The notes under the pieces are model-generated. The model saw nothing but the letters and a program-made list of their open reading frames with translations, was not told the origin of the DNA and ran no database searches. From IMG/VR virus record IMGVR_UViG_3300042455_001086, positions 1 to 64,000 of that record: 64,000 bases of DNA. One strand, given 5' to 3'. Shown piece after piece: positions 38,524 to 59,729 of the stretch (position 1 is the first letter of the stretch; every line of letters begins with the position of its first letter). The translations under genes and the position numbers were made by a program.

Positions 38524-38914
38524 GGGGGTGTTTTTGGATTTGACAGGTATTGGCTGAGGAATAAGGGCATGTAGGGACTAAGTTAATCTCTTTAAAAACT
38601 GACTTGGAAAACAACTGGCAATGTGCTAAACAAAATGGAAACTCTTGGATTAGTAAGAGGTTCTGAAGTTACTGTAGCTTAAGATAAGTTCGGAAACGGG
38701 GGGTCGGCAGACATATAACCTAGCAACAGAAGTCGTAGTTTGATAGAGCACACCGGATGGCTCTCTAAATCCGATTCGGGACCATTGGTTGTTGATTTAC
38801 GATGGTGAAGAACAAATCAACTATTTTGGGATATTAGAAAATATCAACCTAAACATGTAGTCCTTATCTGACAGGATATTATGGACCGGAGTTCGACTCT
38901 CCGCACCTCCACCA
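38524..38914 (+). ncRNA. ssrA: tmRNA
   Basis: 5' GGGGGTG..GGATTTGAC; 3' T-arm CGGAGTTCGACTCTCCG and CACCTCCACCA with G3.U70; tag ORF 38617-38682; promoter and boxA upstream. Confidence 0.95.
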
Positions 38915-41910: not shown

Positions 41911-42765
41911 AAAAAGCCTGAGATTACAGCTTGGTTTGAGAACCTTTTGAAGGATTATTTTTTCCCTTCGTATCCACCATCTTTTGAATGGTATTTCTCA
42001 GTGACGGTTTTTTAGGTATACCACTCCTTTAGGTTTGAATTACTCTCATCTTACTTGACTCTTTCCGAGGATGCCTCCCCAGTTCGTCCTTGCGGGATTA
42101 AAGGTTTTTCGGATAATTACACATCGACTTGGGATCTTTGTGTGCAATGAACGGCTCATTACTATGTAGTCACCTTTCATCCAAACCTGACGGACACTTT
42201 TCCTTTCTGTAGTTAATAATAGAATCATTACTTTCCATAAAGTATTTGTGTTGTGGATTGTGAAAGTAGTGGTCCGTCAACCAAGCCAACCCATCTTTTG
42301 AACGGATCGATACTTAACTACTCTCTGAAATGTCCCCATTTCCATATTTTTAGACTACTTCAAAACAATTCCCTTGGTAAGGAATAATTAGGGTTGGTAA
42401 CAGCACCATCTGTACACGAACATACCTTTCGGTTTTAAGTATCCTATTATATTGGAACACGCAATAATAAAATTGGATAATTCTATTTTTTGCAATATTC
42501 CTACGAGTTATTCCTATTGGTGTTCCCACCTCAAACTGACAACCCACATTGCCAGTTCATCTAACCACTTTCCCTACAGCGTTGCCCTCGGTACTAAAGG
42601 TTAAACGGTATCCCGCTTGTGTACTCAAGTTCAGTTACCCAAACCGCAAACCATTTACACGAATGATTCACTTTATCCCACTTTCGTGGTTTATTTTATG
42701 GACTATACACGGCCCAATATCTTTATCAGTTTCATTTCTTACTCCTGAAAGGATAATCTAATTTT
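41911..42765 (-). ncRNA. Large (~850 nt) structured ncRNA, probably GOLLD-class
   Basis: No credible ORF; GC richer than its surroundings; TAACTTTG promoter at 42803-42810 and boxA at 42766-42775; many hairpins; 3' hairpin plus U-run. Size and tRNA-proximal phage context fit GOLLD. Family assignment not verified. Confidence 0.65.
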
Positions 42766-48362: not shown

Positions 48363-48648
48363 GTTTAAGATGAGTCGTGGACTTGTGTACCACTTGTCCC
48401 CCTTTAAGTTTCTCACTAACCCCGGATGTAGGGAAACTCACCTTATTTGTCTTACAAAGATATGTATTTTATTTCAATCTACCAAATCTTTTTTTAATTT
48501 TTGTTGAGGATTAATCCTAAATTTTTTCTTTAAGGCCCTTAATAAATCAGTTTTTATGTTAGTTTTAACAAATTTAACCCTTCCTGATTCACAAGTCCCT
48601 GATAAAACTTCCTTCATCATTCATTGTTTTTAATTGTTTATTTTTTGA

Positions 48649-48725
48649 ACTACCCATAGGACTCGAACCTACAACCTTCGGGCCGAAGTAGACCCGTGTG
48701 CAAACCAAATTTACACCATAAGTAG
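48649..48725 (-). ncRNA. tRNA-like RNA with an 8-nt anticodon loop
   Basis: CGGGT-CTACTTCG-GCCCG; intact D and T arms. Confidence 0.6.
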
Positions 48726-48819
48726 TTACGCAAGAAGACAGACAGGAATTAGTGTCGACAAATTTCCTTAGGCTATATGACCCATCTTCTTGTTAGGTTC
48801 GGTTAATTACTCCGAACTT

Positions 48820-50488: not shown

Positions 50489-51115
50489 TTATTTTTTTCT
50501 TCTGTAAACCTCACCTTTATAGTGTTTATCAACAAATCTTTTTACTTGTGAATGTGTTAAACCTAAAATATCAGATACTTTTTTTACCCACCCATACGTT
50601 GTCATATCAACACCTTTAATTAAATCTAACCTTTCACTAACAATATCTTCAGTCAATTTATTAAAACCACCGAATTTATCACCCATTTTTTTTGCATTAT
50701 TAATTCTAAATTCTAAAGGTACCGATTCCCAAGTTTTTTTTCTTTTTTCTTTGTTATCCCACGAGCCGGCAATACTTCCATATTTTAATCCGTGTAACCG
50801 TCTTTTTTCTTCTGTCCAATAATTTTTATTTACATGATCAAAAGAACCTAAACCACCCAAAGAAATGTTATATGTGTTTTTATTAGTTACAAAACTTTCA
50901 TTAACTATTTCACTTTCCATCTGAAACATTTGTGTTGGGTTGTCGAATATTGCTAAATATTTTTTATCAAAGTTATTAATCCCGTATTTTTTAATAGCAT
51001 CTTTTATGTTTTTTCCAGAACCCATATACCCATCGTTAATATTATCAGTTTTATGTACACCAACATAAATCTTACCATTAACTTTATTTCTTATTTCATA
51101 AACTATGTATTTCAT
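50489..51115 (-). CDS. GIY-YIG homing endonuclease (Seg-like)
   Basis: YIVYEIRNKVNGKIYVGVH...YMGSG...E...YNISLGG. Confidence 0.88.
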   Translation of the reverse strand: MKYIVYEIRNKVNGKIYVGVHKTDNINDGYMGSGKNIKDAIKKYGINNFDKKYLAIFDNPTQMFQMESEIVNESFVTNKNTYNISLGGLGSFDHVNKNYWTEEKRRLHGLKYGSIAGSWDNKEKRKKTWESVPLEFRINNAKKMGDKFGGFNKLTEDIVSERLDLIKGVDMTTYGWVKKVSDILGLTHSQVKRFVDKHYKGEVYRRKK

Positions 51116-51378: not shown

Positions 51379-52062
51379 ATGAAAACACTATTCACAGAAG
51401 AAGAATATAAAAATTCAAAATCAACATCTAAATTACCTTGTGAATGTTTACTATGTAAAAAATCATTTCTTGTTGAAAAAAAACTAATAACTTATGAATT
51501 AAAAAATAATCGTAATCGTCATATCTATTGTTCTACCGAATGTTATTATAATGCTCAAAAAGTATTACCAATAATTTTTAAATGTAAAAATTGTAATTGT
51601 GAGTTTGACAGAAAAGAATCCTCAAATAAAAAAGATTCTTCTGGTAACTATTTTTGTTCTCAATCGTGTTCGACCACATTTAATAATAAAAACAAAACAC
51701 ACGGAAATCGACGCTCTAAACTTGAAATTTGGTTGGAGGACCAATTAAAAGTTATTTATCCCAACCTTCCAATCGACTTTAATAAAAAAGAAGTTATCGG
51801 TTCTGAATTAGACATTTATTTCCCAACACTTAATTTTGCAGTAGAATTAAATGGTATTTTTCATTATGAACCTATCTATGGTATAGATAAGTTAAATAAA
51901 ATCCAAGAAAACGACCAATCTAAAACTAAACTTTGTCACGATTTAAAAATAGACCTCTGTATTATTGATGTTTCGGAACAAAAATATGTCAAACCCTCAA
52001 CATCAAAAAAATACCTTGATATTATCACCAATATTGTCAATGAACGTTTGTTAATCTCTTAG
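51379..52062 (+). CDS. Zn-finger PD-(D/E)XK endonuclease, antisense to the tRNA operon
   Basis: CxxC/FCS..C; RSKLE..ELDIY..AVELNGIFH. Confidence 0.75.
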   Translation: MKTLFTEEEYKNSKSTSKLPCECLLCKKSFLVEKKLITYELKNNRNRHIYCSTECYYNAQKVLPIIFKCKNCNCEFDRKESSNKKDSSGNYFCSQSCSTTFNNKNKTHGNRRSKLEIWLEDQLKVIYPNLPIDFNKKEVIGSELDIYFPTLNFAVELNGIFHYEPIYGIDKLNKIQENDQSKTKLCHDLKIDLCIIDVSEQKYVKPSTSKKYLDIITNIVNERLLIS

Positions 52063-52118
52063 CCGGCTTTACCCGTTTCCAACAATCACCTCGTGGCGGT
52101 GGATTAACTCCGATTGTT

Positions 52119-52190
52119 TAGCGTGTTGTGGACTCGAACCACCCCGTAGACGTTATGAGCGTCCCATGCAACCAATTACACCTTCACGCG
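52119..52190 (-). tRNA. tRNA-Met(CAU), initiator-like
   Basis: C1xU72 mismatch; GGACG-CTCATAA-CGTCT; lacks the three consecutive G-C pairs. Confidence 0.75.
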
Positions 52191-52195
52191 ATATG

Positions 52196-52302
52196 TAGTC
52201 AAAGAAGGATTCGAACCTATCACGAGATAAGTGTGAAATTCACCTTATCCCAAGGACTTTTGAGTATTGTGTCCCAGCGTCTACCAATTCCGCCACTTGA
52301 CT
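52196..52302 (-). ncRNA. Leu(CAA)-like tRNA with a 13-nt anticodon loop and extended V-arm
   Basis: GGGAC-ACAATACTCAAAA-GTCCT. Confidence 0.6.
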
Positions 52303-52525
52303 GTTTTTTGTAGTTTAGTAGTTAGATTAAACTCTCGTTTCACTATCTTAATCTAACAGGTTGATACACTTAACGAGTTTCCCGTTTCTTACAACCACAA
52401 TATTTCTAATTTCAATGAACTTCCTTCCTTTTTCTGGAGGTGGGGTTACCATCCCTAACTTCCCCACCTCCGTTGTTTGTTTTACAAAGATATGAAGAAT
52501 TTTTTAATCTACCAAATCTTTTTTG

Positions 52526-52817
52526 TACTTGGAGCGGGAATCGAACCCGCACGGGCAAATGCCCACAGGATTTTCTTACCACTATAGTTTTCACTACCAA
52601 CCAAATTGTTGTTTGTGGTCTGGACTATACCTTAACCTTATCTTTTTAGACTTAGGTTCTCCGTGTCTAGTCTCTACACCTTACTCATTTCTGAGTCTTG
52701 GCTCGGTATTCCCATTTTAAAAGGTTCACCGAATTTACGGAGTTCTACTCAGAGGGTTTCCACTCTGGCACTCAAATTATATAAGTCCGGCGTGTCTACC
52801 TATTCCACCACCCAAGC
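52526..52817 (-). tRNA. tRNA-Leu(UAA) interrupted by a group I intron
   Basis: Exon 1 ends GGACTT and exon 2 begins AAAATCC; long V-arm. Confidence 0.92.
52575..52782 (-). mobile_element. Group I intron (IC3-like, 208 nt) at U^AA
   Basis: AAATTCGGTGAA (P), AATACCGAGC (Q), GTAGAGACTAGAC (R), GTATAGTCC (S), terminal G. Confidence 0.92.
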
Positions 52818-52900
52818 ATTTTACCAATATGTCAAAGAACCTTTGTCTTTTGTTTTACAAATATAAAAACTTTTTTTCAATTACACAATACCCTTAAACG

Positions 52901-52929
52901 AAAAAACCCCTCTTTTTTGGAGAGGGGTT
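52901..52929 (-). terminator. Attenuator terminator A
   Basis: AACCCCTCT/AGAGGGGTT stem plus U-tract. Confidence 0.85.
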
Positions 52930-52955
52930 CATTTTAATTTTGTATGTATAAAATA

Positions 52956-53024
52956 TTACACCCTCTTCTTAAAAGTTGCCTCAGCTAAATCGCCCCCTAT
53001 CAATAATATGTGTAAATTTTTCAT
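52956..53024 (-). CDS. Leader peptide A (22 aa) of tRNA operon A
   Basis: MKNLHILLIGGDLAEATFKKRV; follows ATATTTAT and precedes a terminator. Confidence 0.75.
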   Translation of the reverse strand: MKNLHILLIGGDLAEATFKKRV

Positions 53025-53091
53025 TTGCGGTTTTATTTGTTTTGTTATAAATATATGATACTTTTTAAAAGTGTCAAGTTATTTAATTATT

Positions 53092-53598
53092 TTAATCTTC
53101 AATACTATCAAGTAATTCCACAACAGCATCTACTGATTTTTCTAACGCCTTTAAATTTCTTATTGTTACATCATCTTCTACCAAATCTTCTAAATCCCTA
53201 ACTTTATCATAAGCAGATTCCAAGTCATTTAATATTTCATTAAGATCTATATCGTAATCTTCAAAATCACTTTTATGAAGTTTAACATCTTTTTCTTTAT
53301 AAGATTTAACTAATTGTTTAATAGTGCTTAATGTTTTTTTCATTTTAATAAAATCATCCATCAACCCTTCAGCAACTTTATATTGACTATGTTCAAAAGA
53401 ATCGCCTTTTATCATTGTTTTTAATTTACCAAATGCGATCATCATTCTACCAATACCATTGAATAATCCCATAGTAATGTTGTTTGCGGTTTTTCTGACT
53501 TTCAAATCTTTTTTTACACTTTCATAACCACCTTCGTTGATTACTCTTTTAACAATTCTTGTTAAATCTGATTCTGTTAATCTTATTACTTTTTTCAT
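53092..53598 (-). CDS. LTESDL-leader protein
   Basis: MKKVIRLTESDLTRIVKRVINE. Confidence 0.7.
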   Translation of the reverse strand: MKKVIRLTESDLTRIVKRVINEGGYESVKKDLKVRKTANNITMGLFNGIGRMMIAFGKLKTMIKGDSFEHSQYKVAEGLMDDFIKMKKTLSTIKQLVKSYKEKDVKLHKSDFEDYDIDLNEILNDLESAYDKVRDLEDLVEDDVTIRNLKALEKSVDAVVELLDSIED

Positions 53599-53767: not shown

Positions 53768-54277
53768 GTGAAACGAACAATAAGACTAACCGAATCTGAA
53801 TTAATTAATGTAATTCAACGAGTAATTGAAGAATCAAAAGGTGGAAATTTGATGGAAGATGTCAGACTTTTATTTGTCACAATGAATCTTTTTATTCCTT
53901 TAATTGAAAAAGATGGAAAAAAATCATTAGATTACAATGGTGAGATTAAATTTTCTATACCAAAAACTAAAATGGAACAAGACCCTAAAAAAACTGGTTC
54001 GTGGTGGGACGGAAAAAAAGTTAAAAACCTAAGTATTGACATCGCTGGTGATGAGAAATATATGATATTAAAAGAACTTACAAACGACACTAATCAAATT
54101 TCTGGTGTTGGTCCTAGGGTTAGTGAAATTGTTAGACCAAACTCAAATGGTTCATCTGCTCTTTTTGGTTTAATAGGTAAACAAATTGATGGTACAAAAA
54201 ACAAACGTACACAAGTTAATTTTAATGATGGTCTAGTATATGGTGTCGTTAATTTTATAGCAAAACCAACCCAGTAA
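53768..54277 (+). CDS. LTESEL-leader protein
   Basis: MKRTIRLTESELINVIQRVIEE (GTG start). Confidence 0.7.
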   Translation: MKRTIRLTESELINVIQRVIEESKGGNLMEDVRLLFVTMNLFIPLIEKDGKKSLDYNGEIKFSIPKTKMEQDPKKTGSWWDGKKVKNLSIDIAGDEKYMILKELTNDTNQISGVGPRVSEIVRPNSNGSSALFGLIGKQIDGTKNKRTQVNFNDGLVYGVVNFIAKPTQ

Positions 54278-54956: not shown

Positions 54957-55412
54957 TTAACGGCAGTGGTGATCTGCCGCTCTTGTTGCAATTTGATTAT
55001 GGGGTTTTATATTTGTTTTATACCCCAATGACATTGCCCATCCTGTTGCCGGTTGAACCAACTTTGAACTAAAATGTTTATCATCACTATTATAATCCAA
55101 ATCTATTTCAACTTTAACACTAACTTTTTGTGTTAGCCATTCAGCAACTTCAATTGAATAATCGGCCTCATTCCATAATCGTGTCCATTTGTCTTTTACT
55201 TTTTTCACTTTTTGTTTGTGGTAAATATAGTGGACACCTCTATTACCATACCTATATGCTATTGCAGTTACATAAACAGTACTTCTTCTATGATTTTGAG
55301 AATCAGTTCCTATGTGAACCTCAGCCCAGGGACAATCTTTAAGAATGTCTATTGTATGTTTTACAATGTCTGACACAGGTTCACCAGTGACTTTTCTGAA
55401 TACTCTGTTCAT
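54957..55412 (-). CDS. RNase H-like YkuK (DUF458) family protein
   Basis: IGTDSQ..YVTAI..RL..E...S...IDLD.N...A..AAD. Confidence 0.8.
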   Translation of the reverse strand: MNRVFRKVTGEPVSDIVKHTIDILKDCPWAEVHIGTDSQNHRRSTVYVTAIAYRYGNRGVHYIYHKQKVKKVKDKWTRLWNEADYSIEVAEWLTQKVSVKVEIDLDYNSDDKHFSSKLVQPATGWAMSLGYKTNIKPHNQIATRAADHHCR

Positions 55413-58109: not shown

Positions 58110-58119
58110 TTATGAAGCC

Positions 58120-58135
58120 AATATGTCAAAGAACT
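58120..58135 (-). promoter_or_regulatory. rrn-type boxA (AGTTCTTTGACATATT); also at 38508(+), 42766, 48138, 52037, 52412, 52832
   Basis: GTTC(T/A)TTGA occurs ahead of RNA genes. Confidence 0.75.
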
Positions 58136-58230: not shown

Positions 58231-58260
58231 AAAAAACCCAAGGTTTGTCGCCTTGGGTCT
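58231..58260 (-). terminator. Attenuator terminator B
   Basis: AGACCCAAGG/CCTTGGGTTT stem plus U-tract, directly before tRNA-Thr. Confidence 0.85.
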
Positions 58261-58291
58261 TATATTTCTTTATTATGTTTGTTAATCGTTA

Positions 58292-58399
58292 TTAACTCAT
58301 AAATGAAAATGCCCTCGACGGTTTAAGCGTGTTATAACAGAACGACCACTGATTGCGCGGTTGCTTGCTAATGACCATATGTCTAAGATTTGTTTTCAT
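58292..58399 (-). CDS. Leader peptide B (35 aa) of tRNA operon B
   Basis: MKTNLRHMVISKQPRNQWSFCYNTLKPSRAFSFMS; rich in rare G/C-ending codons. Confidence 0.78.
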   Translation of the reverse strand: MKTNLRHMVISKQPRNQWSFCYNTLKPSRAFSFMS

Positions 58400-58493
58400 T
58401 TTTGTTATAAATATATCGTTATTTCTAAAAGTTTTAATTTACTCTACAAAGATAGGTATTTTTTTCTAATAAACAAGTGTTTTTGGAAAAAAA

Positions 58494-59306: not shown

Positions 59307-59729
59307 TTATTTATTTCTTTTTCTACTTTCTGACATTGTTCCAGGACTAAATGGTGATCCAGCACCTAATCTTCTTTTTGGGTCAGAATGACGAGGAACC
59401 CATTTAACATATTTGTCTTTGTTACCAACAATTTCCCATCTTCCTCTATAATTATCTTCTTCAGCTTGACGCATAAGGGATTCTTTTTTTCTATCCCAAT
59501 TATCATAAAACACATCTTCTTCTGGTATAGAGTCTAATTCAGATTTTAAATCATCACGCTTAGCATCTTTTTCTGATTCATCACCGTAACCAGTAAAACC
59601 TCTTTTAATTCCTTTTCCTAAATCACCAAAGAAACCTTCCTCTACTTCAACATCTTGTTGTTCTTTGATTATTCTCTCAACCAAATGAATTAGTTCTGAT
59701 TCGGTTAATCTAACTATTTTCTTTCCCAT
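59307..59729 (-). CDS. LTESEL-leader protein
   Basis: MGKKIVRLTESELIHLVERIIKE. Confidence 0.7.
   Translation of the reverse strand: MGKKIVRLTESELIHLVERIIKEQQDVEVEEGFFGDLGKGIKRGFTGYGDESEKDAKRDDLKSELDSIPEEDVFYDNWDRKKESLMRQAEEDNYRGRWEIVGNKDKYVKWVPRHSDPKRRLGAGSPFSPGTMSESRKRNK

Follow-up and report, generated by a model that had tools for sequence, protein, structure and literature searches.

How does a large phage set the expression of its own transfer RNA (tRNA) genes? Genes of this kind are common in phages, and to our knowledge the control of their expression is largely unknown. The question is raised here by IMG/VR virus record IMGVR_UViG_3300042455_001086, a phage genome of 257,166 bp with 30% G+C whose first 64 kb (positions 1 to 64,000, hereafter the window) were analysed, and within it by unit A, a short arrangement on the (-) strand in which a promoter, a small open reading frame (ORF) and an intrinsic terminator lie ahead of a cluster of tRNA genes (operon A). 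A first-pass annotation had proposed that the tail of this ORF can pair with the 5' arm of the terminator. The pairing is real and conserved, and a covariation check over 45 homologues supports it, which turns the proposed contact from a single-sequence coincidence into a conserved structural switch. On the evidence below, unit A is probably a ribosome-mediated leader-peptide transcription attenuator, gating transcription from its own promoter (P1) and from upstream into the tRNA cluster. The elements of unit A are as follows.

53050..53077, (-) strand: promoter P1 of leader A, TTGACA-N16-TATATT, with 11 of 12 consensus matches
52956..53024, (-) strand: leader ORF A, 22 codons plus TAA, encoding MKNLHILLIGGDLAEATFKKRV
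52977..53015, (-) strand: putative sensing block, spanning ORF codons 4 to 16 (L H I L L I G G D L A E A)
52961..52968, (-) strand: 5' strand of the antiterminator, within ORF codons 19-22 and including AGAGGG at 52966-52961
52930..52955, (-) strand: A/U-rich spacer with an inner helix, in which 52955-52949 pairs with 52936-52930
52919..52926, (-) strand: 3' strand of the antiterminator, overlapping the terminator 5' arm, with only the loop base 52919 outside it
52901..52928, (-) strand: intrinsic terminator, with 5' arm 52928-52920, an A-rich loop, 3' arm 52913-52907 and a run of six T at 52906-52901
52525..52817, (-) strand: tRNA-Leu(UAA), the first gene that would be regulated, split by a group I intron

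The annotation had set AGAGGG, supplied by the last codons AAG AGG GTG, against CCCUCU (52926-52921) in the terminator 5' arm, with an AUUUU/AAAAU helix between the two; its coordinates proved exact on the (-) strand, and the inner helix is formed by UAUUUUA and UAAAAUG. When homologues are aligned, the six base pairs grow to eight columns (52968-52961 with 52926-52919), one of which is an A.C mismatch in the window. The competing terminator has AGAGGGG as its 3' arm (52913-52907, (-) strand) and a stem of up to nine aligned pairs, represented in the window by seven G-C or A-U pairs and an A-U extension, and the segment common to both structures (52919-52926) consists mostly of 5' arm bases. 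Folded alone, the 50 nucleotides (nt) from 52970 to 52921 adopt the proposed hairpin (-11.6 kcal/mol, z = -2.9, equalled by 4 of 200 shuffles), and the complete leader of the window folds into the terminator.

Relatives were collected by pattern scans of IMG/VR and of JGI and ENA lake metagenomes, and 45 distinct sequences spanning leader A and its terminator form the alignment (A3) on which the pair counts are based. The antiterminator (A3 columns 63-70 with 108-115) was paired in 95.6% of cells, compared with 45-67% in slid controls, a pair count reached by none of 500 column shuffles, and compensatory changes on both sides were found in four of its eight pairs (12 cells). The terminator was paired in 94.1% of cells, with both-side changes in three pairs. 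At pair 68-110, 9 sequences carry G-C and 29 carry U-A, and compensated exchanges also occur in single sequences, namely A-U at 64-114 in L040, A-U at 63-115 in L143 and G-C at 65-113 in L147. The change in L147 leaves a mismatch in the terminator 3' arm; being compensated in the antiterminator and not in the terminator, it argues specifically for the tail:arm helix. When only the 18 nt before the stop codon were shuffled, a median of 0.5% of trials reached the stability of the native sequence across the 45 homologues.

Individual folds agree with the alignment. With the 3' arm removed, the minimum free energy fold was the tail:5'-arm antiterminator in all 13 homologues folded individually, and the same 13 folds contained the inner helix, for which the spacer alignment is too gapped to allow pair counts. 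Across the 45 homologues, the fold without the 3' arm ranged from -10.4 to -19.6 kcal/mol (mean -14.2), and the terminator had a mean of -15.6 kcal/mol. RNAalifold likewise returned this helix and no other for the alignment without the 3' arm, and the terminator for the full alignment, and it gave no conserved 1:2 anti-antiterminator or pause hairpin joining the tail with the upstream leader. The alternative helices are mutually exclusive and both are kept by compensatory substitutions; that they are real and under selection is very likely.

The placement of the ORF relative to these helices is equally constant. Leader ORF A is intact in 45/45 homologues, in which both length differences are 3-nt indels, giving leaders of 22 or 24 codons, and its stop codon occupies identical alignment columns throughout, 2 nt past the helix strand. 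Shine-Dalgarno signals precede 4% of the phage genes versus a background of 7.7%, the upstream regions being A-rich, and since the genome does not use such signals, a leader lacking one is no objection to translation. The annotation had further held that a ribosome at codons 4-16 would leave the antiterminator free, while one at the stop codon would mask the tail. Constraint folding of RNA lacking the 3' arm, with a footprint reaching from -15 to +12 nt relative to the first base of the codon in the ribosomal aminoacyl site (A-site), bore out both parts, as the modelled pairing tolerates a ribosome as far as codon 16 and disappears from codon 17 onwards, the stop codon included. More generally, the predicted probability of the tail:5'-arm pairing was 0.6-0.77 for an A-site at or before codon 16 (22-codon leaders) or codon 17 (24-codon leaders) and fell to about 0 for all later codons including the stop, the exact switch-off codon depending on the assumed footprint. 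It is quite likely that the ribosome drives the antiterminator/terminator switch.

What the ribosome would report is suggested by the codons in front of the tail. Of the 13 codons that occupy positions 4-16 in the window, 12 can be decoded by tRNAs encoded downstream (P = 2e-5 for relaxed and 7e-4 for strict wobble), and Fisher's test of leader against operon gave p = 0.0014 (relaxed) and 0.022 (strict). The sensing codons are TTA/TTG, ATA, GGN, GCN, GAG and GAT, and the downstream genes encode tRNAs Leu-UAA, Ile-UAU, Gly, Ala, Glu and Asp. In 22-codon leaders, codons of the operon-A type take up position 4 and the stretch 6-16, in 24-codon leaders position 4 and the stretch 7-17, and then they drop sharply, so that their end (codon 16 or 17) coincides with the footprint limit. 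Among relatives, substitutions in the sensing block are chemically radical yet stay within {L, I, G, A, E, D}. Ile predominates at position 14 (26 sequences), where Gly (4), Leu (2) and Glu (1) also occur, and position 13 carries mostly Ala (29), with Asp (2), Glu (1) and Val (1) as exchanges. The amino acids of the tail vary (K/M/R/V, then E/V/K, then M/V/R/L) while its bases stay paired, a pattern that would be expected of a codon sensor followed by an RNA strand and not of a functional peptide. The suggestion that pairing explains why the tail TFKKRV does not match operon A thus holds, because the tail retains its base pairing while its amino acids vary, and operon-A-type codons end at position 16 or 17. 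In addition, where the leader carries AGA (Arg) at position 10, a tRNA-Arg(UCU) gene was found in operon A in 9/9 informative loci versus 1/26 of the others, a co-occurrence that probably goes back to a single evolutionary event.

A second copy of the arrangement, unit B, lies upstream of a different tRNA cluster on the same strand.

58232..58437, (-) strand: unit B, paralogous to unit A, comprising the promoter block of unit A, a leader and a terminator
58292..58399, (-) strand: leader B, an ORF of 35 codons (MKTNLRHMVISKQPRNQWSFCYNTLKPSRAFSFMS)
58233..58261, (-) strand: terminator B

The two units have in common a 33-nt promoter block that is nearly invariant across 27 viral loci, and the 17-mer ATATATTTATAACAAAA (53056-53040 in P1) has exactly two copies in the 257-kb genome, the other being that of leader B. 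Because the start codon of leader B directly abuts the promoter block, its mRNA may be nearly leaderless. Unit B is followed in the window by tRNA genes for Thr, Gln, Pro, Lys, Val, Tyr, Asn, His, Arg, Arg, Trp, Phe, Cys and Leu(UAG), and all 13 amino-acid species of operon B are present in the leader B peptide (P = 0.003). The nearly invariant 3' part of the leader B ORF folds onto the terminator 5' arm in 14/14 distinct copies, which make up the leader B set; the evidence for this helix consists of per-sequence folds, its register differing between copies. The leaders also divide synonymous codons between them: leader A uses Leu TTA/TTG and Ile ATA and has Leu(UAA) and Ile(UAU) downstream, whereas leader B uses Leu CTT and Ile ATT and has Leu(UAG) and, in relatives, Ile(GAU) downstream. 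Gene order is conserved in the family as leader B, cluster B tRNAs, leader A and cluster A tRNAs, with cluster B running Thr, (Ser), Gln, Pro, Lys, Val, Tyr, Asn, (Ile-GAU), His, Arg, Arg, Trp, Phe, Cys, Leu(UAG) and cluster A running Leu(UAA), Met(CAU), Ile(UAU), Gly(UCC), (Ala), Glu, Asp, and wherever enough downstream sequence is available, unit A stands directly ahead of this same cluster A. Leader A begins about 20-200 nt from the last cluster B tRNA in some relatives, and in these it may also gate read-through from cluster B.

Two further properties of the leader codons were observed. The G+C content at third codon positions is 0.43-0.47 in leader ORFs A and B versus 0.19 in phage genes, and many leader codons are NNG or NNC, which the phage tRNAs would read by wobble.

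The codon evidence bears on the alternative that survives best, namely that the switch reports ribosome engagement in general, as under host shut-off, ribosome shortage or a translation-targeting defence, and that the codon content of the leader is largely historical. With no conserved anti-antiterminator upstream, an untranslated leader would also read through by default, as such a general sensor would; codons 1 to 6 (MKNLHI) never vary and do not belong to the operon-A type, and the mirroring of tRNA genes by codons has exceptions. A general sensor gives no account, however, of why operon-A-type codons stop sharply at the footprint limit, why substitutions are confined to amino acids served downstream, why the Leu and Ile codon choices of leaders A and B each follow their own tRNAs, or why operons behind AGA-bearing leaders contain tRNA-Arg(UCU). 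We consider this alternative unlikely, and we lean towards the view that the attenuator senses the supply of the very tRNAs it controls.

Under the attenuation reading, the tail:5'-arm antiterminator would form first in the nascent RNA. A ribosome delayed at codons 4-16 would allow it to persist, and RNA polymerase would read through into the tRNA genes; a ribosome that reaches the stop codon would cover the tail, leaving the 5' arm free for the 3' arm, and transcription would terminate at the T run. The likely outcome would be negative feedback, in which scarce cognate tRNAs slow translation of the leader and raise transcription of the tRNA genes, while internal promoters would supply a basal level outside attenuator control. 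The two leaders would act as mirrors, the sensing codons of each sampling the tRNAs of its cluster, down to Leu TTR versus CTN and Ile ATA versus ATT, and the last ORF codons of each doubling as the antiterminator strand. That two mirror leaders, in freshwater jumbo phages that probably infect Bacteroidota, give autogenous multi-tRNA feedback on tRNA genes is a proposal to which we give slight preference.

A number of observations weigh against attenuation as proposed, and several of them concern transcription. The annotation had cautioned that a host-type promoter at 52858 and others further in lie beyond the terminator, and such promoters are indeed present.

52858..52889, (-) strand: conserved internal promoter P2 of the Bacteroidota type, ATTG-N20-TATATTTG, between the terminator and the first tRNA gene
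52485..52516, (-) strand: internal promoter TTTG-N20-TATCTTTG

As P2 and the internal promoters bypass the terminator, the attenuator would govern only transcripts from P1 or from upstream, and a TAnnTTTG box lies 3' of the terminator in most relatives inspected by eye, some having only AAGATTTG. Operon A is moreover interrupted by an ORF on the opposite strand (51379-52062). Metatranscriptome contigs over the leader come from relatives only, at a depth of about 3 and with possible DNA carry-over; one of them runs through the terminator, and as a set they do not distinguish termination from read-through. Further points arise from the RNA. The full-length molecule is 99% terminator at equilibrium whatever the ribosome position; since the terminator always wins at equilibrium, the switch must be kinetic, like classical attenuators, and the direct-path barrier for refolding from antiterminator to terminator was 9-18 kcal/mol. 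All homologues are at least about 75% identical, so independent events are few. Pair 68-110 is mismatched in 6/45 sequences, which refutes a clean three-way covariation of tail, 5' arm and 3' arm at this pair. These six sequences look recombinant, since the leader of one subtype is joined to the terminator and downstream sequence of another; a register-shifted helix persists in the mismatched sequences (for example, -17.5 kcal/mol in L141), and the covariation case rests on the whole helix and the three other compensated pairs. The remaining points concern codons: operon A encodes no tRNA for His (codon 5) or Ser (position 7 or 8), many relatives have Ala codons with no tRNA-Ala detected nearby, and the enrichment of rare synonymous codons (P = 0.007 for leader A, 0.0005 for leader B) is compatible with a non-optimised ORF as well.

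The presence of P2 also speaks for a second alternative, in which the unit is an independent small gene or small RNA with a terminator of its own, whose peptide or RNA acts elsewhere while the pairing shapes the transcript or its stability. Promoter, ORF and strong terminator are self-contained, and with a promoter directly after the terminator the tRNA genes need no P1; for a product acting elsewhere there is also a precedent, as trans-acting attenuator RNAs and leader peptides are reported from Sinorhizobium (PMC6614838, PMC7298713). Nevertheless, a constrained peptide would not tolerate the exchanges I/G/L/E at one site and A/D/E/V at a second while keeping to the downstream tRNA set, compensation in the terminator-competing helix of L147 would be unexpected of a plain terminator, and the unit always stands just upstream of the same tRNA cluster where the sequence suffices, which together make this explanation improbable. 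Least probable of all, and scarcely credible to us, is that a protein or RNA factor of phage or host origin binds the G-rich tail motif and its 3'-arm repeat (GAGRKGG) and picks the fold with the ORF incidental. Tail and 3' arm are near-identical direct repeats by construction, and a palindrome in the P1 spacer hints at one or more DNA-binding regulators acting there. Against such a factor, the ORF is conserved together with its frame and the place of its stop codon, the footprint boundary falls where the operon-A-type codons end, no Rfam protein- or ligand-dependent leader was found at E up to 1 save a sub-threshold Thr_leader, and the tail motif is not fixed but changes (AGAGGG, AGATGG, AGGTGG, TGATGG) together with the bases it pairs with.

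Attenuation by a leader peptide is textbook knowledge for amino-acid biosynthesis operons of Proteobacteria (trpL, hisL, leuL, thrL, ilvL, pheL), and unit A resembles these classical attenuators in its short promoter-proximal ORF, in regulatory codons that lie upstream of the point where the ribosome meets the switch, in an antiterminator that uses one strand of the terminator, in a stop codon whose position lets a ribosome ending translation there block the antiterminator, and in the sensing of several amino acids, as in thrL (Thr, Ile) and ilvL (Ile, Leu, Val). It differs from them in that phage tRNA genes and not biosynthetic enzymes would be regulated, that each of six tRNA species is represented by one or a few codons and not by a run of a single codon, that the switch has three segments and no conserved 1:2 anti-antiterminator or pause hairpin, and that the unit is duplicated, two leaders splitting the tRNA repertoire; the phage leaders bear no sequence relationship to the classical ones. 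The pheST operon of E. coli, with its pheM leader, is a cellular operon encoding an aminoacyl-tRNA synthetase, and a single amino acid is sensed. It shares with unit A leader-peptide attenuation of a translation-apparatus gene with charged tRNA supply as the signal, whereas in the phage the tRNA genes themselves are the output and the loop would be directly autogenous.

Among Rfam leader families, Thr_leader (RF00506) was the only one that cmscan aligned to 52897-53024, with a comparable layout of an ORF followed by a terminator, and its score of 21.6 bits (E = 0.24) lies below the gathering threshold of 55, which does not support membership. T-boxes bind uncharged tRNA via a specifier codon and the T-box bulge and need no ORF. 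They too are tRNA-responsive antiterminator/terminator switches on translation-related genes, whereas in the phage unit a conserved ORF overlaps the switch, and no T-box covariance-model match was found in 51900-53100 at E up to 1. A full-text search of the literature yielded no description of leader-peptide attenuation on tRNA genes or in phage. If the proposed mechanism is true, tRNA genes would be controlled by attenuation via the decoding speed that those tRNAs set, so that a direct read-out of decoding capacity determines their transcription. It would give a handle on the near-complete tRNA sets of large phages, which would compensate for a poor or depleted host tRNA pool, and would constitute a compact natural sensor of several tRNAs at once. 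The codon content of leaders should then track tRNA gene content, a relation that can be searched for in other phages.

The genomic setting fits a phage rich in translation-related RNAs. About 25 tRNA genes, a GOLLD RNA and a transfer-messenger RNA (tmRNA) are present in the genome, the tRNA genes lying at 45.4-61.1 kb, all on the (-) strand, with the other two RNAs adjoining this region.

41915-42325, (-) strand: GOLLD RNA, full-length (321.6 bits)
38524-38914, (+) strand: tmRNA gene (110.2 bits)

Judged by this gene content, the genetic make-up is that of a large freshwater jumbo phage, and the genome is present in Logan contigs from lake-water and freshwater metagenome runs. TAnnTTTG is enriched upstream of genes, and promoters of the form TTTG-N19-21-TAnnTTTG occur in the genome; together with the missing Shine-Dalgarno signals, which complete the sole basis of the assignment, these promoters indicate that the host is probably of the Bacteroidota type. 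A genome-contig scan for a host or prophage gave two unrelated matches only and no host sequence, and the cultured-phage database returned group I intron matches only and no close relative. Regarding the scans for relatives, the 17-mer of the promoter was rejected as a pattern by itself, since it hit at least 120 loci among the matches listed, mostly random AT-rich sequence; true relatives among the matches listed were L040, L047, L075 and L119, and longer patterns worked. Ten further loci (L128, L137, L142, L165, L168, L170, L172, L175, L200 and L206) were discarded as random pattern matches, and GGAGRKGG-type motifs turned out not to be a dispersed repeat.

Some additional features surround the promoters and the first genes of operon A. 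P1 can also be read as a Bacteroidota-type promoter, (C)TTG-N19-TATATTTA, and its spacer contains the palindrome ACTTTT-A-AAAAGT (53072-53060, (-) strand), whose arms are kept in relatives while the centre base varies and which is absent from the leader B promoter; this palindrome could be an operator. Past the internal promoter at 52516-52485 comes a G+C-rich hairpin of 10 bp (52471-52436) that lacks a T run on the (-) strand. Another 17-mer was found at two positions.

52824..52840, (-) strand: motif GTTCTTTGACATATTGG, directly 5' of a tRNA gene
58118..58134, (-) strand: the same motif, again directly 5' of a tRNA gene

It has exactly these two copies in the 257-kb genome and abuts terminator A in many relatives, and its spacing does not fit that of a promoter. 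The group I intron of tRNA-Leu(UAA) (52792-52600, 53.7 bits) sits in the anticodon loop and looks mobile, as most relatives have an intron-less tRNA-Leu(UAA). A candidate ribozyme resembling that of hepatitis delta virus (RF02682; 52050-52118, (-) strand) lies directly 3' of the tRNA(CAU) gene at 52190-52119; it scored below threshold (29.4 bits against a gathering score of 44, E = 0.003) and may be a ribozyme for tRNA 3'-end processing. The class-II tRNA-like gene at 52196-52302 ((-) strand) combines an anticodon loop of 13 nt with a variable arm of some 30 nt, and ARAGORN could assign no anticodon to it or to its orthologues in relatives. A third attenuator was considered before tRNA-Arg(UCU), where a terminator and a promoter occupy 61381-61271, and was rejected because an ordinary small protein gene follows and not a leader.

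Three protein genes are interspersed among the tRNA genes at 54957-55412 (-), 50489-51115 (-) and 51379-52062 (+); their products are an RNase H-like protein (PF04308, E = 4e-24), an endonuclease of the GIY-YIG homing type and a protein with a weak PvuRts1I-like match. Pfam searches of the neighbouring proteins gave no regulatory clue. Three paralogous proteins, encoded between the tRNA clusters at 53092-53598 (-), 53768-54277 (+) and 59307-59729 (-), have an N-terminal (I/V)RLTESEL...RVI motif in common and no Pfam match. Inside cluster A, ARAGORN also predicted a tRNA with a four-base anticodon (actt) at 48647-48726 on the (-) strand.

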